From the NCBI GenBank assembly GCA_964035545.1, contig OZ037768.1, positions 22,539,319 through 22,603,318 of the forward strand: a stretch of 64,000 bases of DNA. Reading direction: 5' to 3'. A model generated the notes under the pieces. That model did no database searches and was not told the DNA's origin. It saw only the letters and a list, made by a program, of their open reading frames with translations. Of the stretch, positions 1 to 64,000 are shown piece by piece (the stretch's first letter is position 1; the number at the start of each line of letters is the position of its first letter). The stretch is from Bugula neritina (Eukaryota > Animalia > Bryozoa). Both the position numbers and the translations under genes were made by a program.

Positions 1-3000
1 TTATTCTGAGACACCAGAATTTTCGAATGAGAACAAATTAGTTTTAGTCATAATAAATTAAAGAATAAATGTAAGTGATAGCTAACAAGGTGAAATATGT
101 CAATGAAAGAATTTTGGCAGCACAGGCATGTTGAACTACTTTACTTGATGTGTCACATGATGTCACATGCAGTCTTTGCAAGCCTTAATGAATTGTTTTT
201 AGCTTTAAAAATAGCTTTAGAAAATACGACTTTGACATATTGTGCTAAAGTGACAGACGAATGTTCACAAACTATTTGACAGTTGTATGTTCTTGTCTAG
301 ACATTGGAAAGTGTAGCAAGGAATCTTTTACACAATTTTAAGTTTCAATTTTTTTTTCGGTAATGGCCATATGGTTCTGCTCCCTTACTTTATAAAGATT
401 GGCTTCATTAGTATGTAAAAAGTGCTCCAAACATTCTTTAACTTTATCTCAAGAAGTTTACAATTTATCCGTCAAATCTTCAAAATTTCTTGTAATTTTG
501 TTTACAAATGCACTGAAAATGTGCTGCCAATATTTTATATAAAATAATGACCTTTTCTCTTGCTCTCTTTGGCCACCAAAGATATATCTGACGATGATTT
601 ACAATTTTCAAAGTTTAAGCCCTACTTCTAGCAAAGGGACATAAATTCAATGTAAGAAATAAAACGACATTATAGTTGAACATATATGACTGCTACTGCT
701 GCTGCTGCTACTGCTGCTATTACAACCATTATTATTTCTATATACTACTCTTTCTAAAACATGTCAAAATATTTTACTTCTTCATACTATTCAGCTTGGA
801 CATTTGGACTTGTCAACTTGAGTTACGCAATAAACTGAAAGGCAAAAAATGTTATTGAATCAGAGTTGAAATATTTTATATCCATAAACATCGTAGGCAT
901 CCAGGTTATTTTGATAAAATCAATTACTGTTAATTGAAAGATCATACTTTTTTAGTTACATTCACAAAATATATAAAAAAAATCTCAACTCAATATACCA
1001 GAAAAAATGAATTAAAATATATGTGTTAATAGCACTAATATTGACGTGACCGTGGCACATGAAAAATCTGAAAGAAGAGTTGTCTTCTTTTTTTCTATAT
1101 TAATATATAGAGCTTGTCGTGAAAATAAAGATTTTTAAAAAAAAATATTGTGACCCTCTGGTAACTTCCAGAATTTAGAAAATTGGCTCATATATTTCCT
1201 TTCATGTGGACAACAGCTCACTTTTTTTAAAATTTATTTTGAAGCTCTTTTCGTAAAAAATATTTAAAAGTAAAAAATCCAAAATTTTTACAAATTGGTT
1301 CGGGGCTTGATGTGAAAGGCATTTAGACGAAGATGTCAAGGTCACCATTAATAACTTTATTCTATGACAATACTGCACGGAAAGTTAACCATTTGAGCTG
1401 AAAATTAGGTTGCTAGCATATTGGTATACATTATATTGATTGTTGCAGTATTATTTTTTAAATTTGTTTTATCAGTTATGTTTAACTTCTTCATAGAGCT
1501 GCTGTTAGACTAAGAGTAAGACATAATATTAGCAACAATGATAATAAATAATAATATTAAATTATTATTAAATTCACGAAGAAGTATCACTATCACTATC
1601 ACTATGACTATGATACACTATGACTATCACTATGAGTGTCGTAATCGTATAAATTAATTATGAGTATGAGTATCACTATGACATTAACTCAATCAGTGAT
1701 TGACTAATACTATGAATATGACTATGCATAACTCAATGAGAATATCAATATGAATATCAATATGGCTTCTAATTCTTGTAACTTTTGACTATGACGATGC
1801 TGATAGTCATAGTGATAATCACTGCCAGCCCAAGTCTCATACTCATAGTGATACTATTACTATTGTCTATTAGTATTAATAATTAGTATTACTATTAGTA
1901 CAACTACTAGTATTACTCATAGTTCTGTTAATGATGCAGATGATAGTTTTAGAAGTTCTACTTCTACTTTTATAGTACGCTAGATTGTATATGTTGAACT
2001 CTACTCATTTTTTACTACTAATGCTAATACTAATAGTAATAGTAATAATGATTATAGTTGTTATAATGATAGCAATACTAATAGTAATAATAACTATTTA
2101 AATTTGATAATTTATGTTTTACAACAGCATTATCACTTATCAATTACATTGGTTCATAATATGCTTATTTTAATTTTGCTTTGTGTGTTTTGTCATGTTA
2201 TAAAATTAAGTTCGTATGGTTATTTAATGAACTAGAGAACTAGCCAAATGTTATGTAACAGTTGCAATAATTTACTATAAACTCAGTGAAATTTAAAACC
2301 TAATTGATATTACTATGACATTGATTGTACAGAGGTAGCTAAAATATACATTAAATTACCAATAATTTTAACTCGCCAATACACTATGAGTAGAACAATC
2401 AAATGCAATGATAGAAAATTAATTAGTCATAGCAGCCCGTTGCTTGAAGAACATCGAGCTACAGGTCTAAAATGATGTAGTTTTGTGATCCATTACAAAA
2501 CAAAATAATTTTTTTCAAACTGGTTTAATACTTTTATTATGAACACGCTTATCAAAGTAACATGTTTGTGATGTATATTCTATTAAAAAAGCAATCACAT
2601 CAGGTTTTCAATTTGTATGTTGTACAATGTTTATTATGGTGACAAGTTACTAAATCATATGGTTCAGCTTTGTAAAGTAAAGCTGATAAAATAAATACAA
2701 GTATATGATTGTTTTACTGCTATATATTAAATTTAAATGAGTTGAATAATATCCTAGTGCAGTGAATTAGATATTTTTTAGCTTTGGTACACCTGTTTGT
2801 TATAGGCTAACATTCCACCAATAAAAGAATGGTGCAAGTAGAAGAAATTTCAGGCGCAGAAAGCTAAGGAGCAGTCAGAATGCTGCCAGAGTTGTGAAGA
2901 GGCACTTAAAAAAGCTGAATTTCAATAATGACATGACATTCGTAACATATCACCCTGGTGTATTTGAACTGACATGGCCAGCAGAGTTCTCGAAGTCACA

Positions 3001-6000
3001 TTCAACAGCTATTTACATCATCATGGTTAGCTTAAATTTAATTCCTATATCAGTCTCTAATATATAGTTTGATATCTGCTGTAAATTCGCTTAAGGAGCA
3101 TACACATAACCAAAACTGAGTTACACTATAGTATTTGTTCTTGAATATATTTACCAAGATAAGTAGATTTGCTAATTCATTAACAGTAAAATTATAATGA
3201 TACAACAATTTTTCTTTTAGATGATTCAATCAATAACACAAGACACTACAACATGGTTTTGCAGTTATAGAGTATTAATTTTCTGGCTCTTTCCAAATCT
3301 TCATAGAAGGCAAAGAAAACCACCGTCAGCTTGCCTTTATAACTGAGTGCAAGCTTCTTCCACCTACAAATGATGATAAACAATTTGCTGATGTGGAACT
3401 TTCTAATTTTGTTTACAATGAAGATAGATTATAGGACATTATTCTTTATGTAAAGATTGTCAAGTTTTGTTATAATTAAGAACAGTTTTAGTTTCAATAA
3501 ATCAGTTCAACATTATGGACATCATTGCACAAACATTTTAATCTTTACTACCTACAAAGGTATCTGATGGACTACTTGAAAATACAAAACTATGCTCCAG
3601 ATACACAATGAACTGACCAGCAAAGTTAAAATGAGTTGGAGATGTAGAACATAATATCTTGTTCAAGGCTTTTCCCTGCTGTTGGAACCTTCTACTTCAG
3701 AACACTGAATTGAACAAACATATGTAGATATATAAAACTTTGCAAACAATAATAATGTGAAATTAGTTGCTAAGTATCACATTGCTAATAAATACAGCGT
3801 TGTGTAATGTTTTATTTAATTTTTTTTTGAGCCATTTGATCTATAGGCCCGCATAGTATTTACTATATTATAACTAATAAATTGCAGACACATTATGTCA
3901 GACCAGTCTCCATTTAAATAGAATAGTGTAGGCTATCAAATTTGTAGAAGTAAAAAACCGCATTCTTATTGAGTAAAATACTTACCTTTTTTTTCATGAT
4001 GCCTCTACTGCTAAAAAGAGAAGTTTTTATCAATACAGCTCCATCAATCTGTATCCTGATGAAGCTAGTAGTTTAGGAACATTTGTGGCGGGGAGTGTAG
4101 GCTGAGCTGCAGTATAGGAAGAACCCCAACATATGTAATCTATTCAGCACGTTATATGTATTGTAGAAATTTATTCAAAAAAGAATTTAGAAAATGCTTT
4201 ATGAAGCATGAACAAAGTAAAAATTAATTAATATTATTACACCCATTAGAGTTACTAGCAGCTATAGCATTAAAATTATGTATTTTTATAAAATGTGTCT
4301 AATTTATGCTACAAAGTGATTACTGCCAAAGGTTACAAAATTTACCAGTCGCATTCATGCAGCTGATGGAGAATAACAAACCTTCACATGCAACAAATAC
4401 AATTAGTAGCTCAATCTAAAACTAATGTTAGGAGTATAAGTTATAGTTATTCTAAGGAATAATTGCAAAAAAAGTTACTTAGAGGAATTTAACTCTTATT
4501 ATAATGTAATTATCTTCCAAGATATATTACAACATCACTACTTGGATGCATACAATGTCATATTTATATTGGCATCAACATAATTTTCAATAATTTCCAA
4601 TCTATTAACTTGAGCATTATGATTGTGATTATTTTATAAATAAGGCGATGATTAGGCACTGTTGGTATTTTGGTTCAATTTATTTATAGCTGTAACAGGC
4701 AGAGTTGTAAATATAATGGATATATCAAAATTCCAATGGGTATAGTACTCTAACACAACATTGATACTAATAATTGTAGTCACTTACTCTTAGAGTTAGT
4801 GAATGATGATACAGTCATAACAATTTGAATATCAATCAGCATTAGAGATAGACTGACTGCTTTATAATATTATAGTTATTATGTCAAATTGAATTTATTC
4901 ACTATAACTAAAAAAATTATGATTATAATTATAAATTAAAATAATTTAAATAATATATTGATAATTATTGGAAGCATAATTATATTTATTGTTATGATCA
5001 TTATGATTATAATTATTTAATATTATCTTTATGTTTGTATTTAAAGTTGTTCCTTAAATCTAAAGTTGTTTAAGTTTTATAAATTTATTATAATTATATT
5101 ACTGTATAAGTATTGCTATTACTATTAGTATTAGTATAATTAAATTATTATAATTTATATTTTATTATTTATATTTATTTTACTTTTTATTTTAAGACCA
5201 ACAGTTCAAATTAATACTTGTGTCGTTTGCTTTATATTATAACTTACAAGTATAACTATTAACATAATAACATTAGATTTGCTATTAGTATTACTATGAA
5301 TATAAATATTTATGTTAATATAGCTATCGGTATAACTTATACTTATAGTTATAACTAATATTACCAGTATTACTATTACTGTATTAGTTTCGAAACTGAT
5401 CCTGCTCCGTAACATTAACATACTGATACTGTCATATGATTATCATTATGACTAATAATGGTATTAATAAATATAACCATTGAATATTATTAATAATAGT
5501 TCACCAATACTAATAGGCGATAGTCATAGACTTAGAGTGAGAGTCATAGACATAGACTAGTGATACTCATACTCTACTGATAGTCATAGTGATACTGTGA
5601 TTCACTGATTCAATTACAAATTTTAAAACTTGGTTTTACGTAGACAACTACTAACCTATAGTTCATCACAAAACGGTTGAAAATCATCATTTACTGCATA
5701 TTTAAGAGTAATTTTCTGGTAGTGTGGTCGACATGATAATTGAAATTAAAATAGGAAAAATAATTATTTTGTGATTTACAGCAAGTTACAAACTAGCGAA
5801 ATGGAATAGTCCATTTGAAAACAGTCAAATTAGTTACCTTTCTTGATGTTGCGTAGCTAACGTTAGTTATTAGTAGCCGCCCGAAGAGTAACATTCATGT
5901 GATTTGAGCTACGAATAACGAGAATCTGTGACAAACCCGCTTCTTAATAACTTTACGCGATATAAACTCACGCTACAATAGGGCTATTTTGCCATCCCCA

Positions 6001-9400: not shown

Positions 9401-12400
9401 AGTTCAGTCATACCAAATTATGTTGTATCCTTCACTTAAAGCTAATCTTTCAATTCTGGATTTGAAATAACTTTGTGGCTAATAACCAAATAGTTTTTGA
9501 CCTTGACTTAAATGAAAGACGCGTCTGCTGTTTCTCTATGCTGACGATAAATGCCCAAGTAACTGCTGCTGAGACTTAGCAGCTGTATAGCTCCTTTTTG
9601 CAATGCTTAGAAATTATAGTAAACAATTTTATGTCACATCTGAAATAATATGAACTGATAAAGTTAATGCTGATCAAATTTTGTATTTTTGCATTAATTT
9701 ATCACGTTTAATTGGTTATCATTGATTGATTATAATTGATTAGTTATAATTAATTATCATTTCTTTCAGCTGGCGGTCATATTCTAAAATAATTCACCAA
9801 GTTTTCATGCTTGAAGCTAGTATATTTATATCTAGACTAAGATTCACACCAAGCAGTTTTTTATTAAGTAATTTTAGCAATTTTGTCATATGAGCAGATT
9901 AGATTTTCTATGATAGCCTTATTTCATGGAGATTGTGTTGGTATAGTAACACTAAACTAAAGTGGGTTGTACACACCACTTCAGTTGTTACGTAATAGTT
10001 CATTGAATATTTTTGTTGATCATTGATCATGGAGTTCAAGTATTACTCAAAGTAAATACTTAGGTCTTAGAGTAATACTTGAAGTAAGTGCTGGGAGTAA
10101 GTGCTTGGAGTAAGTACTCTATATACTTGAAGTAAGTGTTTGAAGTAAGTCTTTCCACTCAGTATATCCTAAGTCTAGACTCAAAGCATTCCACTATATA
10201 ATTATATGTTCCTATACTATTTTATTATATATTATATAGTTATAATTATTATGACTATAGACACTTGAGTATTTCCAGGTGGACCAACACACTGGACGTA
10301 AAGGGCAATGCCACCATGACCATTGAGTTTCTACACTCAGATGATCGGCCTGTTGCAGACGTCAAGCCAATGATTAGAGAGATACCAGAGGTTATTCTTA
10401 TATATTAGAGTCTTCCTTTCTCTTCTGGTTAAATATAGTATAATATACATATATACATTGTGTATTAGAGTCTTTCTTACCTATAGTTTTTGTTAAATAG
10501 GGATAAGAAAAGAGTTTTTTTATGCCTAAATGAGTCATTTCAGCTTTTACAAACTCAGAACTTTTTTTACTTTCTCTTTATTGTAAAATATATTTTATAC
10601 GATTCTTTATATATTTGTGAAACTAGTAAGTTTTCCCATTTTAATAAACTATTGAAACAGAAGCACAATTCTTGAGTATTTTCAATTAATTTCTGCCGGT
10701 CATTTTCACCAACTTTATACACTGTGTTGCAGTTTGACAACAGTAGGGGAGGAGCAGAAATCGCTGTGCCTACCGTGGATCTTGCGAACCATCTCGGCAG
10801 CCAGAACGCGCTCATAGGCAAGCAGGTGAAGGTCTCTGTGGTCATGTTGGACTGGCACTGGAACAAGACATACAGCGGCTTCTCGACGACTCGAGTCTTC
10901 TCTGATGAAGTCAATCTGAAGTTCCTGGGAGGGCGAGTTTGGACTTTCAAACCGAATGTACCGTTCAAGATTTATGTGAGTAACTCAATGAGAATATGTA
11001 GATGCAACTCTAGTATGTAGGAAAATATAAGGACTTGATAGATGCAGTCACTTCTTGATATTAGATTCAGTGTGAACCATTTTTGTGTACTCTGCGAGCA
11101 TTTGGTAGAGGAACAGATTTAAAACTGGAAGAATTGTGTCTCAATAAGTTTTAACCTGCATGCTGCATACTTGTCAGGTATTTTATTACCTCCTTCATGC
11201 AAGAACTATTACGTAGTATTTTTGGTAATGTGAATTTGGAGCATGTCATATGACGTGGTATATATCAGTATTGAAGTTTTGGTATGTGTGGTTTGTAGTA
11301 CTTCAATTCATGAATATACTGTATAATGTATATTTTTACTGTATATTGTATACTCTATATTACATATATTGTATACTCTATAGTGTACATTGTATGCTGT
11401 ATAACATTGTGTATTGTATACTGTGTATTGTATATTGTATATTGTACATTGTATACTGTGTATTGTACATTGTATACTGTGTATTGTACATTGTATACTA
11501 TATACTGTGCAGTAAATTTGTAATACTTATGAGTACATAGTATATAGTATGCTGTCCATGCTATAAAGTGTAAACTATCGCTGTTTACAGATTGCTGCCG
11601 TCAAAGCTGACCAGTCACCCATACAGAAAGTGGTTTCACAGTTTGAAGAAAAAGTCGAGTTACAAATTTCTGTGGAAGATGAGGGGGTCTCTGCCAGCAC
11701 CCGCACTGAGTATTTGACAGTCCCTAAGTCTAGTATTGTGGAGTACTGGCTCAGACCTGGTCTCACTACTCAGCGAATCACAGTGGTGGTGAGTTCACGT
11801 CTGCTAATCACTCGTAACTCGTAACATACACAACTCGTAACATACACAACTCGTAACATACACAACTCGTAACATACACAACTCGTAACATACACAACTC
11901 GTAACATACACAACTCGTAACATACACAACTCGTGACATACACAACTCGTGACATACACAACTCGTGACATACACAACTCGTGACATACACAACTCGTGA
12001 CATACACAACTCGTGACATACACAACTCGTGACATACACAACTCGTGACATACACAACTCGTAACATACACAACTCGTAACATACACAAAATATTTTCTA
12101 CCAGAAAAATCCATTATCTGTAATATAAGCGCATTTATTCAGAAAATGGCTTCAAAACATATATTTTTCTCTTTGGTATTCAAGAAGACTGAAGCTATAA
12201 TAATGTAATCTAGTTTGTCTGCATTGTAAGTTGTCTGCTACTTTTTTGAGAATGTAGTTTTGTTAGCCTTCATACTATCTAATAAAATTATGCAGTAGGT
12301 TTTGGAATGCTTTCTGAGGTGGCCCCCAATCTCACTGGTTTTCACATACAAGTTATACCATCACAGTGTAATGCAAAAAATAGAATCATCTTTAGCGTGG

Positions 12401-46860: not shown

Positions 46861-49800
46861 TTAGAGATCAATAGCCCAGGAGTTTTTATCGGCAAGATTT
46901 GTGCGTAACTTATCCAGTTCGTCCCGCACTGCTTTGAGGCGTTCATCCCCGCAAGACTCACATGATCTCGGTCTTGATGACAAAATGTCTTCAATTTCTA
47001 TCTGCAATTGCGTAAAGATTATAGATATATAAAACTTGTGGTGGTATGTATTTTATAGTGATCATTTGTGGAGAAAACAACTTCTATTACATAAAACCAC
47101 AATTAGCCTTTAGTCTCCGATACATTAAAAACTATAATTTATTTAAATAATAATTATTATTATTAAACTTTTTCTAAGGCAAGTAATTGTTAATAACAAA
47201 CAGCATCATTTGAATTTAAACTATAATAGTTATTATTATTTAAGTTATACATCAAATTATCCAAAGATGTTACATTGGTTGGATTGAGTTTTTTTAAATA
47301 TTTAAAATAAAGAATAATAATAGAAATATAGTAGCTCACAATCGTACCAAGCAATTCTTTAGTAATATATTCTCTTTCCTGTAAGACTCTATCATATCAG
47401 ATTTATATTTAGATCTTGCAGACGGATTCTACAACAGACATTATCATACAACTAGTCTGGCTGGTAGGTTTATTGGTTAGCATTCTACAGAAAAGCTACA
47501 ATTTCATGTTTTGTATATGGAATAGTAAGTATAGCCTGAAAATGCAGTTACAACAACCTCAGTCTTGTAAGAAACAATGTCATTACAGGAGAGGGCACAA
47601 CTCTCCATTTCACACATTTACTCAACATGCAGGCATTTAGTTTTCTGAATAGTAAGTCTTCTGTACCAGATTAAAATCTTCACATGTGCTTTTACTTAAA
47701 TTTACAAGAAATAATTATTAATTCGGATGCTTATAGAGAATATAATATTTCTGCAGAGAAAGTGCAGATAAGTGCTAGAAACTTCCATGCTATAGAAACT
47801 ATGAAGAAACCAGATTGACAGATAAAAACATTTAATGAAAGATAATAAGTTCAAATTATTGCTATTTGAAAGCTAATAATGATTTCTTAACACGGAGTTC
47901 CTAATGAGGAGTTATGCTCTCTAATAAAATAGCTTTATTCCCAAACTTGTACATGAAATACCCAGTTAGAAGCATTATTAGCACCCTCCCTACTAAATTA
48001 TCTTACCACTCGTGAAGCAGTACTTCTCTCGATGTCTTGGTAGCCCCAGATCTCTATGCTAAGATCCTGGTTGACTACATAGTCTTGGAAAAGATGGTTA
48101 GCGTTGGCAATAGAGATCATTTGATTCAGATTGTACACTGGGTTGATTCCGGACTTGGGTTCGCAGAGATATGGCTGATTGTGGTCAAAGAATGCAAACT
48201 TACACCACGTCTGTAAAAATGCAGAGTCTTGCATTTAAAGCTGTTGGAATGAGGTCATTTAAACTATGGCAAGACTTAATTAATTTAATTATACACAAAA
48301 AATTTTTTGTTTCTAAGTGTGAATCGTATTTCAAAGAGAATACAAGGTTTTAAAAAATAATCATACTAATAATTTGCAACTAGTAATTTTATTTCTAAAC
48401 AACAAAACCTTCTTTTAAATAATTACATTACAAAGTTTAATGAAAAGAATAGACAGTTGTTAAAAAACCGAAACTTGTTTGACTTAAAAAAGCTCAAGCA
48501 GTTGTATTATTGTAAAAATCTGCAAACATCAATAATAATTTGCTTTCTACAAATCCAGATTCTAGTAGCTTACCTTGGTGAAGTTACTTGGAATGTTAAA
48601 AGCCTGTAAAACTTGAATCTTGAAGTGAAGATTTTTCCCAATCTAAAATAAAATAAATACTCAAAACAAAAAATTTCTAGTCAGCATAAAAGTAGTCTCT
48701 CTGTGTGTGGTCGCTTAACACTTAACATAGACTGTGTTTCACTCACCAGATCGGTGGGCTCGTCAATATCATAGTCGTGGTCCTCGTTGCCTTCTGCATC
48801 ACAAGGAGTTATCTGCACCTCCAGACTTCCAACACGTTCTGCTTCGTAGTTCAGCATTACTAGAGTGTCTTTATATGGAACCATCATAGAAAGAGCCAAA
48901 AGTGGAATAGCTGCGATACCCAGCAAACATTCGGTCTCAGGTGGCTCGTAATATGGGTCCTCAAGCTATACCAGTTTTAACAATTACTAATGAAACTTTC
49001 GCAAGTTCACATAGCTATATGTTTATATTATAAACTACTAGTTACTATATTGTATTATATACTAGTTACTATACTGTATTATATACTAGTTACTATACTG
49101 TATTATATACTAGTTACTATACTGTATTATATACTAGTAACTATACTGTATTATATACTAGTTACTATACTGTATTATATACTAGTTACTATACTGTATT
49201 ATATACTAGTAACTATACTGTATTATATACTAGTTACTATACTGTATTATATACTAGCTACTATACTGTATTATATACTAGTTACTATACTGTATTATAT
49301 ACTAGTAACTATACTGTATTATATACTAGTTACTATACTGTATTATATACTAGTAACTATACTGTATTATATACTAGTGACTATACTGTATTATATACTA
49401 GTTACTATACTGTATTATATACTAGTTACTATACTGTATTATATACTAGTAACTATACTGTATTATATACTAGTTACTATACTGTATTATATACTAGCTA
49501 CTATACTGTATTATATACTAGTTACTATACTGTATTATATACTAGCTACTATACTGTATTATATACTAGTTACTATACTGTATTATATACTAGTAACTAT
49601 ACTGTATTATATACTAGTGACTATACTGTATTATATACTAGTTACTATACTGTATTATATACTAGTTACTATACTGTATTATATACTAGCTACTATACTG
49701 TATTATATACTAGTTACTATACTGTATTATATACTAGTAACTATACTGTATTATATACTAGTGACTATACTGTATTATATACTAGTTACTATATTGTACT

Positions 49801-52800
49801 ATATACTAGTAACTATACTGTATTATATACTAGTAACTATACTGTATCATATACTAGTTACTATACTGTATTATATACTAGTTACTATACTGTATTATAT
49901 ACTAGTTACTATACTGTACTATATACTAGTTACTATACTGTATTATATACTAGTTACTATACTGTATTATATACTAGTTACTATACTGCATTATATACTA
50001 GTTACTATACTGTATTATATACTAGTAACTATACTGTATTATATACTATACCATATACTGTATTATATACTAGTTACTATACTGTATTATATACTAGTTA
50101 CTATACTGTATTATATACTAGTTACTATACTGCATTATATACTAGTTACTATACTGTATTATATACTAGTTACTATACTGTATTATATACTAGTTACCTC
50201 ACTATACTCATCAAGCACGTGTTCCCCCTCTGATATATATCTGCCGTACTGGTCCATCATAACCCCCTGTCTCTTCACAAACTTCTCAGTGCCCCACATA
50301 TACACATTTCCCGTGTTCTGATCCATCATTTTGATGTATATCTGGAAGCAGGTAAAAGCACTCTCGGCTACATGAAAACCATCTTGTATTCTAATTGCTA
50401 CATGAAAACTATTTTACTATACCAACCTAGCTGTCCAATAAAAACCATTTGAGTCTAAATGATAACATACATTTTACCCAAAGCAACCAAGTTGCTAAAC
50501 TAAAGCTACTCATTTGCTAAACTAAAGCTAGCAAGTTGTTAAACTAAACTGATACTCATCAATTAAATTCACTCCAACCCCAGCCATAAGAGACACCCAA
50601 ATTTAACTTTTAGTAGTATATAAAGCATTATGTACGCTGACCTCATTTCGACCTTCACTGAGACCTCTAGCTAAAGGGGAGACAATTACCACCTCAAACT
50701 TATAGCCTTTGGAGAGATCTTCAGCTATAGCTGTGGCGTCTCGCACTAGAGGTAGTATGGAGAGAACCTCATGCTTCAGAGTCTCGTCTGCAGTGAGTCA
50801 TAATATGGATACAGGAAGTGTGCGATAAAAAGTGAGAAAGTGGGGATAGGAATGCACACTAGACTATAAAATTTTACTATTCATCAGTGGATACAACGCT
50901 TGAACTATCACCAGTAAGGTTCTAAACAGCTGTGATACTAATGTGTAGACAATAAGAATATGTTTGTATAATTTACAGTACATAGCAAATAACCATACTT
51001 ATTGTACATAATCATGATAGAAAAAATACCTAAAGGAATACTATGTATATGTAAAGTTATAATCAGTAGAATAATATATTACAGCTATAACAATCAACAG
51101 GGAGTTAGTGCTGGTCTTTCAAGCAAACCTGTATTCAGTAGAACTACAGTAAAAGAGAGCAGTTACAGAGTACACATTCCAGAATATTCGTATGCTCACC
51201 ACCCTCAATACTCTCTACAAACTGGCGGGACAACTCCTTCTGTGCAAACTCGTAGGAAATTGATTCCAGCTTCTTTCCTTCCTTTTTAAACTTGGCAACT
51301 TTTCTGGGATCAGTGATGACAAAAATAGCGCGGTCCTCAAAGCAAACTCTATAAAACATAGTCTAAACAGTTGTTCAGTCTGCAAATAATATAATCTCAT
51401 GTAATTATCACTGAAATCTAACAGCATCACAACAACTTGGAACTGTCTAACATTAATCCAACACTTTTTCATTTAGAGTTATCTTATTTTAAAATAGCTT
51501 CCACGGTAACTTTGATGTCTACATATTAACTCGTGGTAGTATAATATTATATAACTATTCGCCATGAAACAGCGAGTTTGCCAGTGTATTTCTATAGAGG
51601 AAATTTCTGTCTCTTAAATGTTGCAGTTGATGTTGCATGTTGATATGCTGGCACATTTTGTTGCTCAAAGTTTCGAGGTAGGTGCGATAATCAAGAAGCT
51701 GAAAAAAGCCTGTGTTCCAGAGTAGAGATGTAGCAAATGAATTTATGTTTTCGCGAGAATTTTAACCCGCGTCCCAAACCAAAATTTAATAATAAAATTA
51801 AGGAGCTTAGGCTATCTCAATTTTTCAGCAACTGCTCCTAAATGCCAGTCTATCACTGTGATAGACTGAGTACCTATCATTGTGATGCAGTGACTTTTTA
51901 TCCTTGACCTCTTTGCCATTCACACAGACTTTGCCCTGCTGCCGAGTTATACTCATTTTGCCATCCACAAACTTTATGACAGCATGCTGCTGATAGTAGC
52001 CAGGGCCTGACAGTACAATGTCAGCTGCAGGTTCAGCTTTAGTATTGCCTACTAGCCTCACTTTACCTGCAGTGTATATACAGACACTATAACTCACTCC
52101 AAAAAAATACACCATATTTTATTTGATGCAAAATATGCAAAAGAAGTTCATAGTCAATATTTTTAAGATACGAGTGATTATTGAAGTTTAAATATTTTAC
52201 AAAATAGCTGAAAATACACAAAAGATAATGCACCAATTCATCAATTGAATAACCAAATATATTTCATTAGATTAATATTTAGCAGCTGCCACATACCCTC
52301 AGGGAGGAAGTGAATAATCTTAGCACATAGACTTAGATCTTCGTTTAAGTTCCACAGATATGGAACTCTGTCCTTCTGCTTTTCCTCGGCCTCCAACTCA
52401 TCAATTCTCTTCTGCTTAGCTTCTTGCTCTCGTGATAAACGCTCAGCCCATGACGTCTGCAAGTCTTCCATTTCTTGTTTATATCTGAAATGCAACAATG
52501 GTGACACAACTCCCACGTGAACAAAACTGGTTGGACGGAGCTGAATATTATATTATACAAACAAGTTGAACAACCAGACATTTTGGTGTAGTAATAGATC
52601 GATTTCAATAGCCTCAATTTTTTAACTGCTTGCTTTTTCTTAGGGGTGCAGGTTAAAAATCTCATAAAAGTATTACTTCTTTATCTATCTTTCTCATCTA
52701 TAACAGACCTAATGCAAAGTACTTAGGATATTTAATAACCAAATGTTTTCAAAGATTTAATGATTAAATAAGCATTATGGTTATGACTAACACATTGAGC

Positions 52801-56703: not shown

Positions 56704-56827
56704 TATAAAAGTCTTATTAGAAGCCAAAAGTAGTTATTTAGTAATTTTATAATCTATTGTTTTACTTTTATCAAACCCTACGTGCTACGGAATAATATTA
56801 TGGCTATGGACACTATCAGTATGGTAT

Positions 56828-56920
56828 GGGTGTGACTAAAATGGGTGGCCACCCGGTGTCGCGGTCCGTGACACCCATTTTAGTCATAAGGGGGGGTTTT
56901 GACTAAAATGGGTGTCGCGA
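56828..56920. repeat. Putative terminal inverted repeat region of the MULE, with internal palindrome
   Basis: TGACTAAAATGGGTG at 56833-56847, its exact reverse complement at 56872-56886, and a third direct copy at 56900-56914. Confidence 0.7.
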
Positions 56921-57984
56921 AAAATTTTCGTTTTATTTTTACATTTTTAGACAATTGTGACCATTGAAATCATTGTTAAATTATTCTTCAGTAAATATTG
57001 AATATTTCACAATAATTTAAAACCAAAAATCGCCAACTTATCATAATAAAATTTAAAAAGTTAGAAAAACTAAAGTCTACCAAGAGTTATCTTTCCTTCG
57101 CAATCAATAGAACTAGTACTAGGTCGTAGTGGCGGTGGTGGTGGTAGTACTATAAGTATAAGTTATAAGTATTACTATAAGTATAACTAATTGCTACTAG
57201 TTGCAAAATGAATTTAAATTTTCATTTCAATTCACAGTTGGAATTATAAAATTAACTCAATGGTGAATGTGACAGTAGGCTACAGTGAGTAGGACTAGGA
57301 GTATGTCTTGCTCAGTCTAAGTGTAACTTCAAGTCTGCTAACAGCTATCTCAATTTGTTATGTCAACAGTCAATTGTAGTACCTATTTATACTAGGATTA
57401 ATTCTACCTATACAGTCAGTATGGGTATACAACGAATAAGCAATCATTATACGAGTAATGCTAAAAAGTAGAGTAAAACTACTATAGTACTAGTACTAGT
57501 CATACTAAATCTAATTGTTGTACTTTTAATTTCATAATTATAACTTTAACTATAAGACCTAGTATAGGATTTAAATTAATATTATAATCATAGTGGTTTT
57601 TACTATTAGTATTAGTATTCTAGAGTTTTACTATTAGTATTACACTTACTATTAGTATTACTATTAGCATTAGACTTATTGTTTTATTATTGTAGCATAT
57701 TCAACTATATCATTATATCCTTTAAGATTTTGTATTAGTACTATTATCAAAAATAATACTAATATATTAATGATTTAATAAATATAAAATTAGATAACTG
57801 ACCAGTAAACTAATATTTATTTTTAATTTTGTCAAGTTTTTTAAATTTATTGAATATTAAAATGAACATGATTGTTTTGTTTTACCTACTATTTTATACT
57901 TCTTCAAATATATGTTGCAACATGAAATGAACAAAATTATATTTATTTTCATATTCAATGTGGTTTAAAAAACTATTTTGCTGA

Positions 57985-58155
<171 letters not shown>

Positions 58156-59430
58156 ACTCACGCAAGTTTATAGTCACTATCACAGTGAGAAACCCCTGAT
58201 AAAAAGGGTTTTTGTTAGATCAAGATAAGAGCATGTTTAGATGAGGCACTGGAGAAATTATGACTGTATGCTCTTCCTAACATCACCAATGGCCTTTGTT
58301 GGGGTTCCAACCCTTGACTTCGTGTTCACTAAGCAAGATCTAGATCACAGCTGCTGTTTTAACTGTCACTTTAACACCATTAAATTTAGTTTATCAGAAC
58401 AACTCATAATTACAATGATGATTATGATAATGATGGTTAACTGTAGTGTATGATATGCCAAGCAATCTTCGATGGCTTGGGTTTTTTGCTGACCCAATAG
58501 GTAGGTAGGTTGGTGGGTGGGTGAGTAGGTAGGTAGGTAAGGTATGTAGGCTCTTTTAAAATTAGTTTTTATATGTTTAATGTAATTGCAGACATGTCTG
58601 GTAAACAATTATAGTTACACAAATTTAGTAACTCCATTGAAGAAAATTAAGGTGTATTTTAAAGAACTTCTTTTACTATAATTTAGTTTTTGCTAATATA
58701 TATTAATGTGATTACCAACTAGTATTGTAATATCACATGGGGTATATGATTATTACAATGGTTGTGAAATGTATTATATTCAAAAGCACTGTTTAATTTT
58801 TCTGCAATGCTTTTACTCAACTAATTTATTTTATTAAATTTTAGTTTATTTAGACTTCAGCTTGATTTACGTTCAGCAAACCACTAGGCTACTGTAATTC
58901 CTAAATGAGTCATCGTAGTTTCACGTCAAACAAACTCAATTTGCAAGCCAAATATCCTTGATCTAAATTCTAGATAATAAAGTGCACAAAGTCTAGAATA
59001 AGCATGACTGAGACCTAATTTCAATAATCTTTATTTCATGGAATTAAGGCGAAATTTGATAATTTGAATGATTGTTAATGACTAAATTATATTGAATAAT
59101 CAACATTAAACACCAATGATTATGAATTTAGTAGTATTACCTGTTGCAAGACTTTGGACAACAATTTTTGAATGTGGCATTTAAATAGTTTATTCGATTA
59201 CAATTATAATTTATTTACAACCAAAACCTATATAATATGAATGTAATATAATTGTTTAAAAAGACTTTTCTCAAAGGTCTTATGACAATACTATTGGAAA
59301 AAATGCTAAACAGGGCATTACAAAACTACAGTAACATTTGTATAGGCAAATATTAGTAAATGACATTTGTTGATTTAATGGTCTTGTTGAACAATGTTTT
59401 TAGTTATAGTTAAATGATTTTTAAAATATA

Positions 59431-61738
59431 CTACCTTGGAATTACTGTAATACCTTTTTGGTAGCATAACTGATGAACTTTTTTGAAATCTATCGATCCA
59501 TCTGCTACCACTGTATTAGAAAAAATACATCTATAGATTTTTGATTTCCTAATGCACATTTTGTCAATATGAAAAAAGTTGTGTTGGTGTTTAATAACAA
59601 AACTGTCAAATAAATTAAAATCTTGTTTACATCCAAAGCAGTTTGTTATGCGCCTACTTCTTCTAATAACTATGAATTCTAGATTAGTAGAGTTTAATTT
59701 GTTCGCAGTTGTGAGAGCTGAATTTTCACTAGATCCTTGCATTTTGTTAATATTTTTTACGGTTACACTACTATATCCATTTTCAGATTTGTTTCGGAAA
59801 ATACTCTTTTTGGACTGATTGCTATCTTTCTGTGCTCCACGCCTCTTCCTTGGCTTTTCATTTCTTTTTCTTCCTCCATATTTGTCGAGAATGTTTTTTA
59901 GCTTTGGTTTTGGTGTCAAGTTAATAGAGGAATAACTGCTATCTCCAGCATGCTGTGCAACAGCCACTATATGTGCACAGGTCATCAAATTTTTGTAGGT
60001 TTCACAGCTGCAGCATCGTTGAGAGTTGTGCCTTGATTTTATAGTTTCATATTGTGGTGAATTGTCAAGTTTTGAAACATGATCTTCACTGTTCCTAACT
60101 TGTACAACTTCTGCATTACTAGCTTTACTCATTAGCAAATTCATCACTTCATTTTCGTGCGAAATTTCTATATTCTTTTGATTATTAATTGTTCTAATTG
60201 GATCTAATTTTATGCCTTTCCAAGTATCTAATAAGATAAATTTTTTCGATATTCCAGATATTCCTTTTTTCATTTCCTCTAACATTCCATCAACCATTTC
60301 TTTTAGGCAGATGCAAAGGTTGGACACTGTTAATTTTTTTCCTTGAATGTATCTTTTGATCATTGCATTACATGACTCAGAGGCATTTGTTGTAACAAAA
60401 GTTGATTGCGCGAAATTGTATTCTTGGATCTTTTCATTAGAATTTACGATAAGAGAATCCCAGATTTGTTCGTTGAAATAGTGTATAAATTTGCAAACAC
60501 TTTGGTAGCAGTTGTTTCGACTAATATTCTGCCAGTTTTCAGTGGTGTTTTTTCTCTCTTCTTTCATTTTACTCTCTGTCTCTCCACTCAATTTTTGACT
60601 AATGTCATATAAAATAACCTTTTTTATGCTAGCTGGTATGCATAATTGAGTTAGCTTTCGTTGGATGTTATCGTACACATGTGAAAAACACCGAAATGCA
60701 TGTCTTTTAGGAAATATTTGAAGAGCCTTTAGTATTGCTTTTTCACCATCAGTTACAAATACTAATTGTCTATGTTGTAGCTTTGGCAACTTTCTGATGA
60801 GATGTTGGAAGAACACAGTGTAGCTACCACTATCCATTTTCTGAGTCAGCATCATTGGTCCAATTGTTATTGGGGATCCAGCAAATCGCTCATCTCTCAA
60901 TGTAAATATCACTGTGTACATGTTCGTTAGATTAAATGTAGTGTCCAGGTATAGTGGCCTCCTTAAGTTTATGGCACATTCTTCAAATATTTTCAATTGT
61001 TCCTTTGTATATAGGATGACTGTTAAATTTCCATCATCAAAACTAATTTGTTGGATAAACTGATCATGTGACTTTTGCGCAAAATACAATGCGTAAAGTG
61101 ACTCCACTGGATCTGCTTGTTTTTTGTTCCTAAAATTTCTTATTTGTTTTACATCTCTTGGCACTGCCCCTATTGTTCTTACTGTATGCAGTTTTTTAGT
61201 TATGGCAGATTTGTTGTATATTGTCACTGGGTTTTCGTTGCTATGTAGGCCTGTTGATTTGTCCTTTAGCTCTTGCAGCAATGCTTTGTCACTCGGAAAG
61301 AAAGGAACTGGTCTTTTAGAGTTTCCATGGGGTTTGACAATAACTTTACTTTCAGATGCATTGTCAAACCTATATTGAATAATTAATAAATCTAAAAAGC
61401 TTCCATCTCTTTTCTTAAAAGTTATTTCCGTTTTCTTCAACCCCTTATTGCCTTTGCAAACAAAGCTGTTTCTTCTGCTTGACATGAAGTGTTTTCCATT
61501 TACTTGAGTGGCTCTGGAATTTGTTTTTATCCAGACCCCACAGCCATCTCTTCTCATTTCGTAAATATCAGCATTTACTACATATATAGCGCTACAAATA
61601 ATGCCATTTAATCGTTTATGGGTCACTACTTGCTCGTAAGTGATAGTGTCTTCTATTAGTTTGTTGGTTAGCTCTATGGCATGTTCAGTGGTTATCAGTG
61701 TGTCAGTGTGCAGTGCTGGCACATTTTGATGACATGAC
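59431..61738 (-). CDS. MULE (Mutator-like) DDE transposase exon with SWIM zinc finger
   Basis: Stop-free 2.3 kb exon. D1 YLDTTFNL (~60945), D2 FVTDGEKA (~60750), CxxH RCFSHV, E in TTNASESCNAMIK (~60378), SWIM CSC..YKNLMTCAH, basic NLS GRKRNEKPRKRRG, C-terminal CxxC (NCFGC). Acceptor ttttcag immediately upstream of 61738. Confidence 0.9.
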
Positions 61739-62013
61739 CTGAAAATAATAAAAATATATTTATTTTTATTTTAACTGTCAGATAATTCTTAACTATTTTG
61801 ACCACAGGCAACATTGATTATATAAATAAAGTTATGTTGTATGCCTAGAAATCATATGAATTTTAGGTATGTTATTATTACAATTGTGTCATATGTTGCC
61901 ATTGCATGTTACAATATGGCCTTTCAGTAGCATGCATGATAAACCAATCAATCTTACAAAGAGTAACAGTTACAATCTAAAATTACAGAAATTATTTCTT
62001 TTCCAAAACTTAC

Positions 62014-62649
62014 ATTCTAGTGAATTGGCCATAAGTTTTGAACTTTACTTCAGCATCTGCTTTTTCTTGTATGTTGATAGGCATATGATGTTGCGGAGAT
62101 CTGGTCATTGCTGTGCACACAACAAAATGGTCTGGAACTAAACTATTCTCGTCTTCAACATATCTACCAGCAGTAGTCCAACTGAGAATGATTTTGTCAT
62201 CACTATTTTCATTGAGCCTTAGAAGACAGTTCATATATCGTGGTGGTGTTTGAACAGGGTATATAATTTGTACATTTATTCCTAAAAGATGAGCTATTGC
62301 AATTATTAACCATTGACTGCCATATTCCCCATTTCTCATAATTTCGATAGCGTGATCTTGCATCAGCAATTTAGACAAATTTTCTGCACCGAAATCCAAA
62401 TTACCTTGTGTCATGGCACTAGCAAGTAGAGCACAATATTCATCATCATCAAGCTCAAAGCCAAACCATTTACTCAGGTTATTTCGATTCATTATAGTGT
62501 CCATGCTGTTATATAAGTGTACACATGCCCGAATACGAAGTTCTACATGGCTCTTTTCATCTGAGTAAAGAGCACAACTCAGCGCTCTGAACAAGCAATT
62601 CCCATCACCGTTAGTTTTAATGGCTCTAATATCATCTATTCCTATTTTC
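62014..62649 (-). CDS. OTU-like (vertnin-type) cysteine protease/deubiquitinase domain exon of the transposon gene
   Basis: KTNGDGNCLFRALSCALY..H.ELR, GEYGSQWLIIAIAHLLGINVQIIYP and PDHFV: OTU Cys box (Cys ~62597) and His box (His ~62129). Acceptor ttttcag upstream of 62649; donor AT|gtaagt at 62014. Confidence 0.85.
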
Positions 62650-62854
62650 CTGAAAAATATAGTTTTACATATACATACATACATGCATGCATACATACAT
62701 ACATACATACATACATGCATACATACATGACACATCTCATTTTTAAAAATAAAATTATCATTAGGTATTATAATTTAGATTATTATACCCTTTTCTCTTG
62801 CATGGAATTATTTAATAATAGTTATTTTAATCGATTCATTTTTTGTCGATTTAC

Positions 62855-63651
62855 CTCAAATATTTGTTGGTAATCTCGTCATCACATGTATTTCCCGTCT
62901 CACTTTGTAAACGGTTTTCTTTTCTCTTCTGAATAGTGTTTATCTGTAGAAAATCACCAATAAAATCATTGAAATACACTTGGTTGGAAATTCTCTATTC
63001 AGACAAAAATTCTTTGGATTTTGTTAGCAGCAAAGAAAGAATTATAAATTTAAAAATTAATTGCTACCAAAAGTTGGATCTAAGGCATTCGATTATTCCA
63101 GACAATGTTTTATTTTAAAATAATTGAATTTATTTAAATTGAAAATATTTGTGAAATTACTGCAAATTCTTTTAATTATAATTATTGTCAGTTTGAGAAT
63201 TGTTTTTCACTGCAGGTTGACGTTTACCTTTTGGACTATCTTGGGATCAAGGGCTCTGCCAGGCTCACTCAAAGCTACTAGCTGGGTCTGAATTTCTTGA
63301 AATTGCTTTTCTCTAATGTGTGTAGATGGTTGGTCATCTTGTGTCTTTAGAAAATAACAAGCGCACATGATGATTGTTTTTCAAAAAGGTCATATAATGT
63401 AGCCTACATAGCTTTAGCTGCTTTATTTTGGGTGAGTTCAAGTAAATTATATTATATTGAGGAACATTATATTTTTAGCTTGTCCAAGTTGTTTTTATGG
63501 GAAGGCTTATTTTGTACAAAAATGGTACTAAATTAATTTATATAGTACTAAGGCTTTTGGTTACCTTCTGAACAACAGAAACTTCTTCAATTTCTCTAGA
63601 AGCTACAGGATTTTCGTCAATGTTATGGCTTTGTTGTTCTTCTTCTCGCAT
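62855..63651 (-). CDS. Three small upstream exons of the OTU-MULE gene (acidic/polar N-terminal region)
   Basis: 63651-63565 (MREEEQQSHN...VVQK), 63344-63228 (TQDDQPSTH...KIVQK), 62943-62855 (INTIQKRK...NKYLR). All open, GT-AG, and phase-compatible with the OTU exon. The true start may lie further upstream. Confidence 0.65.
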
Positions 63652-64000
63652 CTATAAAAAATGATCAGGTTCATGTTCAAATTAATATATTTAGTTGAAA
63701 TATATCCATATAAACTAGAATTTTATTACAAAAAAATAAATGAGAAACATTGTGTTTTTACTTTATTTGCATAAAAGCCAAGTAAACTATTTTGTTTTTA
63801 TATAAAAAATTAGTCTATTTCTAACATGTTATATGTATATTATGTTTCACTTTATGGCACCAATTCTATGCAGGTTAATGATCACGTGAAAATTAAGGTA
63901 TATTATGTATTATATAGTTTAATAAATAATTTTATATTTACACCCACTGTGTTTCCAGTTGCCTTTAATGGTCTACTTAGATATAAGCACAAGTTTTACG

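Follow-up and report, generated by a model that had tools for sequence, protein, structure and literature searches.

The 64,000-nucleotide stretch of the bryozoan Bugula neritina genome analysed here (C4:22539319-22603318, referred to below as the window) contains the coding core of a 17.2-kb Mutator-like element (MULE), a full-length and recently mobile DNA transposon. It is quite likely that this element encodes one protein composed of an N-terminal OTU domain, a MULE transposase core, a SWIM-like finger, basic clusters and a CxxC motif, and that a 275-nt intron between the OTU and transposase parts of its gene is spliced out. The genome is 216 Mb in size, has a GC content of approximately 33%, and contains genes with introns.

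The gene lies on the reverse strand, and its central feature is the junction between two open reading frames (ORFs), 62010-62735(-) with the OTU domain and 59431-61722(-) with the transposase. The original prediction had proposed that the apparent stop of the first ORF lies inside a splice donor, and direct reading of the sequence confirmed both ORFs and the matching phases at 62014 and 61738. Read base by base, the OTU cysteine-protease exon (62014-62649, delimited by Pfam, alignment and a predicted model) ends in ACT AGA AT/gtaagt at 62014, and the transposase exon (59434-61738, delimited by the ORF, Pfam and the alignment of relatives) begins with ttttcag/G TCA at 61738. Since the terminal AT and the following G together make ATG, the frame continues across the 275-nt intron (61739-62013, GTAAGT...TTTTCAG), and the in-frame TAA at 62012-62010 falls inside the donor. 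The transposase exon is the last one and is followed in the ORF list by the stop codon at 59431-59433. Three further coding exons precede the OTU exon, including a short one of 29 codons plus 2 nt without a recognised domain (62855-62943), one of 39 codons that is 98% identical to an older copy designated D (63228-63344), and an acidic one of 29 codons (63565-63651) that served as exon 1 in the original prediction. Their GT/AG borders and phases agree; the introns of the gene measure 205-284 nt, and the five exons total 3234 nt, or 1078 codons, as had been claimed. Removal of the intron whose GTAAGT donor holds the apparent stop would yield a protein in which the OTU domain is followed by a MULE DNA-binding region, the DDE/CxxH core, the SWIM-like zinc finger, the basic clusters and the C-terminal CxxC.

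Conserved splice sites, constraint on the exons and collinear proteins in Styela clava and on a sequence-archive contig all point to a fusion of the MULE transposase to an intact N-terminal OTU domain. Two decayed copies of this region are present in the genome, C (C4:12.46 Mb) and D (C3:6.89 Mb), and a 5′-truncated copy of the OTU-transposase region with approximately 94% identity was found on metagenome contigs (L042/L043; JGI samples 3300003318 and 3300002729, contigs AY690838_*). All donors and acceptors are kept in the three diverged copies C, D and L042, in which small indels occur only just inside the introns. The OTU domain is present upstream of the transposase in C, in D and in the second full-length copy on C3. 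Identity to copy D is 96.5% without gaps in the OTU exon and 94.7% in the transposase exon, whereas the introns are 85-92% identical; the corresponding Ka/Ks values are 0.52 for OTU (based on few changes) and 0.33 for the transposase. The short exon 62855-62943 is conserved no better than the introns.

The same data bear on the possibility of two proteins, in which the OTU product ends at the TAA 62012-62010 and the transposase starts from an internal Met as in two-gene MuDR, or in which alternative splicing gives an OTU-only product in addition to the fusion. We consider such an arrangement quite improbable. The in-frame TAA does follow the OTU ORF directly, but the GTAAGT donor and its acceptor are kept in all diverged copies, the relatives from Styela and from a Sequence Read Archive (SRA) contig have OTU and MULE in one continuous ORF, and a start codon from which the OTU exon could plausibly be translated alone is lacking, the sole ATG being located in an intronic TGTA/TGCA microsatellite. 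The frame is also open from the acceptor onward, with 61 open codons before the transposase exon reaches its first Met, a condition seen at 4% of background positions in the window. Two observations weigh on the other side. This Met (residue 61 in the translated exon, residue 56 in the ORF list) lies ahead of the conserved transposase part and would allow a separate transposase, the homology to the protein of Clytia beginning only at residue 116 of the exon; and no near-identical full-length protein was found in protein collections, the exons having been searched singly as separate queries. Overall, comparison of the sequences indicates that OTU and transposase are most likely joined in one protein by splicing, which is the natural reading because an N-terminal OTU-MULE protein is conserved in relatives, the most telling of these comparisons. 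The imperfect TGTA/TGCA microsatellite, at 62680-62735 (-) in the intron 5′ of the OTU exon, gives rise to a spurious 'MCHVCMHVCMYV...' start in the ORF list.

A protein of about 1078 aa had been proposed; the sum of the exons is exact, but the start at ATG 63651 is probably wrong. This ATG is preceded directly by an acceptor-like ttttttatag, and further upstream exons are apparent, which makes it doubtful as an initiation site. A phase-compatible GT/AG exon is located upstream at window-equivalent 64350-64084; identity to copy D is 93-97% in the 5′ part of this exon and approximately 80% in the flanks, and additional phase-compatible GT/AG exons lie farther upstream (L022 3990-3862, L022 4752-4656, and two more beyond). 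No Pfam domain was detected in seven candidate upstream exons or ORFs. Judging from these features, the exon 63565-63651 is probably internal and the protein longer than 1078 aa.

The OTU assignment is based on several comparisons. Pfam OTU (PF02338) matches the ORF 62010-62735(-) with an E-value of 4.9e-8 and 34 bits, above the cut-off of 23.3, and a HMMER scan with the OTU exon alone retrieved 282 relatives at E<=1e-3. An alignment of 40 sequences gives the subfamily consensus GDGNCLFR ... IMWT ... PNHFVP, in which D14, G15, C17 and H173 are each at least 90% conserved. The catalytic residues are the Cys in GDGNC (62597-62595) and the His in PDHF (62129-62127); the latter was already proposed in the original prediction and is identified by its conservation in the alignment and by the motif P[DN]HFVP in the fused relatives. 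A phmmer alignment had paired a 'GRY' with the GHY of OTUD1 as a candidate His site; it was rejected, as the conserved His sits in PDHF instead. An AlphaFold2 model of the OTU exon (pLDDT 84.8, pTM 0.81) has its best PDB matches by Foldseek in OTUD3, OTUD1, OTUD5, nairovirus and other viral OTUs, Cezanne and A20, with a Foldseek probability of 1.00 for OTUD3, OTUD1, OTUD5, the viral OTUs and A20. As far as the model and the alignment indicate, the exon encodes an apparently intact OTU-fold cysteine protease.

The transposase exon shows the corresponding features of a MULE enzyme. Pfam MULE (PF10551) matches the ORF 59431-61722(-) at 6.2e-8 with 33.4 bits (cut-off 27.6), and SWIM (PF04434) gives an E-value of 0.002 and 18.1 bits, slightly below its cut-off of 19.6; of the Pfam models that had been suggested for the check, OTU and MULE scored above their cut-offs. 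A SWIM finger behind the catalytic core is frequent in MULEs but not universal. The SWIM-like CSCx8CAH is located at 60012-59971, and its CxCx8CxH motif aligns with relatives. The DDE triad consists of D265 (60945-60943), D330 (60750-60748) and E454 (60378-60376), and the CxxH motif of C350-F-S-H353, in which H353 is invariant and C350 at least 90% conserved; 10 MULE relatives show no or hardly any variation in the triad and CxxH. Other motifs in this exon include PHGNSK, the basic clusters RKRR and RRSRR, and a C-terminal CFGC. The closest transposase relative, from Clytia hemisphaerica, is merely 26% identical. The claim that all catalytic residues of both enzymes are present therefore holds for the OTU Cys and His and for the DDE and CxxH residues of the MULE core, the position two residues after the OTU His being Val (HFV).

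Proteins of the same general organisation were found elsewhere. Three long proteins among the 282 OTU relatives, with 1083 aa (P0049), 987 aa (P0134) and 955 aa (P0065), are collinear with the OTU and transposase exons and contain PHD, OTU and MULE domains. The last two come from the tunicate Styela clava, where they are found at several loci; the RefSeq entries of this type in Styela (XP_039247589.2, XP_077969092.1, XP_077976471.1 and XP_039258759.1) are all annotated as 'uncharacterized protein'. The first is one continuous ORF on a 4.1-kb Logan contig of SRR26065830. At the Styela locus, one uninterrupted exon encodes residues 70-987, with OTU and MULE together. Both parts of these PHD-OTU-MULE proteins are 24-30% identical to the window exons, with the N-terminal OTU followed by MULE as here and with the OTU motifs GDGNC/GNGNC ... 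W ... P[DN]HFVP, and the Styela copy likewise resides in a long-TIR element (TIR, terminal inverted repeat). Unlike the Bugula element, the Styela and SRA relatives possess an N-terminal PHD finger, an undivided OTU and MULE, and a much longer linker; tblastn with the three PHD-OTU-MULE relatives matched only the OTU and transposase exons of this element, and no PHD finger was found in it. The protein comparison shows, at the level of domain order and motifs, that the N-terminal OTU-MULE form appears in at least two animal lineages. One Styela locus (L045, OZ123525.1:985494-999114) holds an element of approximately 8.1 kb encoding PHD-OTU-MULE with the PHD finger on its own exon, between TIRs of approximately 670 bp (2176-2840 and 9614-10280, 89.5%). 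The same 987-aa protein occurs at three Styela loci, and the OTU-MULE family there is therefore probably young too.

Alignment of the two full-length copies in the Bugula genome defined the element and its ends. The in-window part occupies 56828-64000 (-), and the full element of 17,221 bp spans C4:22596146-22613366, that is, from window position 56828 to window-equivalent 74048, extending approximately 10 kb beyond the window end. Its TIR at 56828-57099, the 3′-side end relative to the gene, starts with GGGTGTGACTAAAATGGGTG, and the outer ends of the 17.2-kb element read GGGTGTGACT...; the two TIRs are 97.7% identical over the first 132 bp, and the match extends to approximately 272 bp at 84%. 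A 9-bp target site duplication (TSD), GTATGGTAT, is located at 56819-56827, with its partner adjoining the opposite end of the element beyond the window, and the sister copy at C3:24770687-24787916 is flanked by another 9-bp TSD, TACTCATAC. Only 2 substitutions across 17.2 kb and a few microsatellite or homopolymer indels separate the C4 and C3 copies, including an 8-nt length difference at an (AT)n microsatellite (57992-58075) that precedes CA-rich repeats in the 3′ non-coding region of the element, and the five in-window coding exons show zero differences. The same TIR also bounds many non-autonomous copies of 0.8-2.6 kb, mostly approximately 1.7 kb (at least 40 TIR matches were scored), and 9-bp TSDs were present at at least 7 of the 12 inspected (six exact and one with one mismatch). 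MULE TSDs are typically about 9 bp long, with a range of 8-11 bp. The features of Mutator membership found here thus include the MULE-type DDE domain, the C/DxxH motif, the 9-bp TSDs and the long TIRs. Taken together, the two near-identical copies with differing TSDs and the TIR-flanked non-autonomous copies show that this is a DNA transposon of the Mutator superfamily that moved very recently.

The existence of merely two full-length, nearly identical copies might also be expected of a host gene in a segmental duplication or of an assembly duplicate, but homology stops exactly at the inverted repeats, distinct 9-bp direct duplications are present at the two sites, and many short copies are bounded by these same ends and in most cases have clean 9-bp TSDs. 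The structure of TIRs and TSDs refutes such an origin, whose probability we regard as negligible.

Within the element, no further long ORFs were detected in the other 10 kb, and no match at E<1 to a second, decayed OTU or transposase gene was obtained. An internal 1-kb inverted repeat (94%) is located outside the window at window-equivalent 69833-72155 (L022/L026; element coordinates 1894-4216 in gene orientation), the inner ends of which look like the element's own TIR, and the non-autonomous copies of approximately 1.7 kb keep this palindromic segment between their TIRs, giving them a Foldback-like architecture. The longest ORF of the window outside the element, 48990-50321 (+), has an ATG start and 443 aa, and no Pfam match at E<=0.01.

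The relation between the gene and the outer ends of the element is less straightforward, and here the older copies weigh against the reading of the 17.2-kb unit as a simple autonomous transposon. Homology of C, D and L042 is confined to window-equivalent ~64692 to 58994, and none of these copies is flanked by this TIR. Because homology stops at 58994 and no flanking TIR is present, the unit may be chimeric in origin, and this transposase is not necessarily the cognate enzyme of its outer TIRs. C, D and L042 all lack the final 2.2 kb of the element (58994-56828, TIR included). One alternative is that the OTU-MULE gene is carried as a passenger within a composite element, the outer TIRs of which come from a MITE-like family served by a different transposase, the 17.2-kb unit being mobilised in trans. 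The lack of these TIRs near the older copies would be consistent with such a passenger, as would the fact that the non-autonomous copies share just the ends and the internal palindromic segment. Against it, 9-bp TSDs together with long TIRs are typical of MULEs, another intact transposase gene was not found inside the element, and both full-length copies keep the in-window coding exons intact. We therefore consider the passenger scenario unlikely and regard it as probable, on the strength of the two insertions that differ by 2 substitutions, that the element is moved by the transposase that it encodes.

Several other features of the older copies were recorded. Downstream of its OTU-transposase copy, L042 holds in inverted orientation, at 79% identity, a segment placed upstream of the gene in the present element; this segment (window-equivalent 68589-69557) was considered as a dispersed repeat and rejected, being found only in the two full-length copies of this genome. 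No useful inverted repeats were detected in the metagenome contig L042 or in the SRA contig L044 (genomic or transcript). Copy D contains a 4.85-kb insertion inside its OTU-transposase intron, and approximately 4 kb downstream lies a second, far more diverged MULE fragment with 33-54% protein identity (C3:6887641-6892490 and C3:6898510-6900811; L020, L024, L025).

With regard to function, the element would be expected to move by cut-and-paste transposition catalysed by this transposase. The OTU domain may act as a deubiquitinase in cis, which would strip ubiquitin or ubiquitin-like modifiers (Ubl) from the transposase itself, or from chromatin or repair factors at the site of excision or insertion; on the present analysis we regard this role as about evenly balanced between true and false. 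The idea of ubiquitin/Ubl removal has been raised for the Ulp1 and OTU domains of transposons (PMC2836005) and for Helitron deubiquitinases (PMC9741609). Two points count against it, namely that none of the OTU domains of transposons has been assayed (PMC9741609), and that the residue two positions after the catalytic His is Val (HFV), an acidic third catalytic residue not being seen there. Any catalytic acid must therefore lie elsewhere. In A20, the catalytic acid Asp70 comes from elsewhere in the chain.

An alternative role is that of a processing protease that would release the transposase, or peptides from the N-terminus, by cutting a long precursor, in the manner of some viral OTU-like proteases. 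Polyprotein processing was proposed for MULE-OTU fusions of Medicago (PMC1702500), and the N-terminal region of the protein predicted here is long, domain-free and encoded by several exons; conversely, all of the nearest solved structures belong to deubiquitinases or deISGylases, a cleavage site is not apparent, and the Ulp1, USP and VTD domains on other transposon superfamilies point to removal of ubiquitin or Ubl as a common need (PMC2836005, PMC9741609). Processing of this kind appears to have a low probability, and deubiquitination in cis is the role that we favour for the domain.

The question is of general interest, as several unrelated superfamilies of DNA transposons have acquired ubiquitin or SUMO proteases, such as Ulp1 in MULEs and Ginger1, OTU in Ginger1 and Helitrons, VTD in Helentrons and USP in others (PMC2836005, PMC9741609), and no role of transposon OTU domains in transposition has been shown so far. 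The present element is an intact and evidently very young MULE with defined ends, plentiful short non-autonomous partners and the catalytic Cys and His of its OTU domain in place, which makes the role of such a domain testable. In addition, the N-terminal OTU-MULE form, found in at least two animal lineages, has thus far been annotated just as 'uncharacterized protein'.

Vertnin (VRTN), which the original prediction had named as carrying a related OTU-like domain, was the second-best structural match of the OTU model in the ESM Atlas (TM 0.68 by query, 172 residues, rmsd 3.1), and canonical plant OTU entries were lower (TM 0.54-0.56). Vertnin_mid (PF28388) gave no match at E<=1 and membership in the vertnin family was rejected, only the OTU fold being alike. 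Human vertnin has been classed as a catalytically inactive OTU homologue (PMC10318531), unlike which the Cys and His are present here. A bolder proposal, in our view rather improbable, is that animal MULEs of this genome and of tunicates depend on an active vertnin-like OTU, that this OTU clade, which also includes Helitron and pogo-like members, was the source of domesticated vertnin, and that retention of the intron would act as a regulatory switch by producing an isoform with OTU alone. A cluster of plant MULE proteins in the Atlas is auto-named 'OTU domain-containing protein', which is a lead only.

Whether the architecture was already catalogued had been left undecided by the original prediction. 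Our search of the literature on OTU with Mutator, MuDR, MULE or vertnin returned a single mention of a MULE-OTU fusion, a one-sentence report by Babu, Iyer, Balaji and Aravind in 2006 of Medicago truncatula MULE transposases with a C-terminal OTU-superfamily protease (PMC1702500); a 2019 survey of MULEs mentions neither OTU nor any protease (PMC6446971), and no publication on animal PHD-OTU-MULE proteins was found. As judged from its description, the Medicago fusion combines MULE with an OTU-type papain-like protease as in the present protein, but the OTU is C-terminal and the host a plant, whereas here it is N-terminal and the host an animal, a form represented in RefSeq only by uncharacterized proteins. 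MULEs with Ulp1, sometimes together with a PHD finger, are also known (PMC2836005), including the KI-MULEs of Arabidopsis, melon and rice, MuDR elements of hydra and lancelet, and NOF/Foldback-like proteins, which likewise place a papain-like ubiquitin/Ubl protease on a Mutator element. The protease here is OTU (clan CA, family C85-like) and not Ulp1/C48, neither ORF matching Ulp1/Peptidase_C48 (PF02902) at E<=1; the element is accordingly an analogue and not a member of the KI-MULE type.

OTU domains have also been described in Ginger1 and in the RepHel proteins of Helitrons and Helentrons (PMC2836005, PMC9741609, PMC6431247), where they are fused to a transposition enzyme as well, but the enzymes (integrase-like DDE and HUH-helicase) and the element structures differ. 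The same applies to a pogo-like relative of this OTU (P0119), composed of HTH_psq, DDE_1 and a C-terminal OTU, which is fused to a transposase too but differs in enzyme and element structure. Other relatives of the OTU include an N-terminal OTU with a Helitron RepHel (P0150), and among those of the transposase is a protein with MULE, Ulp1 and PHD (P0003); a further protein consists of PHD and OTU only (P0108). These four arrangements, as read from their domain composition, show that the same protease modules seem to recur on different transposases. In view of the C-terminal OTU of the Medicago MULEs reported in 2006 and of the OTU domains of Ginger1 and Helitrons, the pairing of MULE and OTU is known in outline, and the animal N-terminal form is a variant of it and not a new kind.

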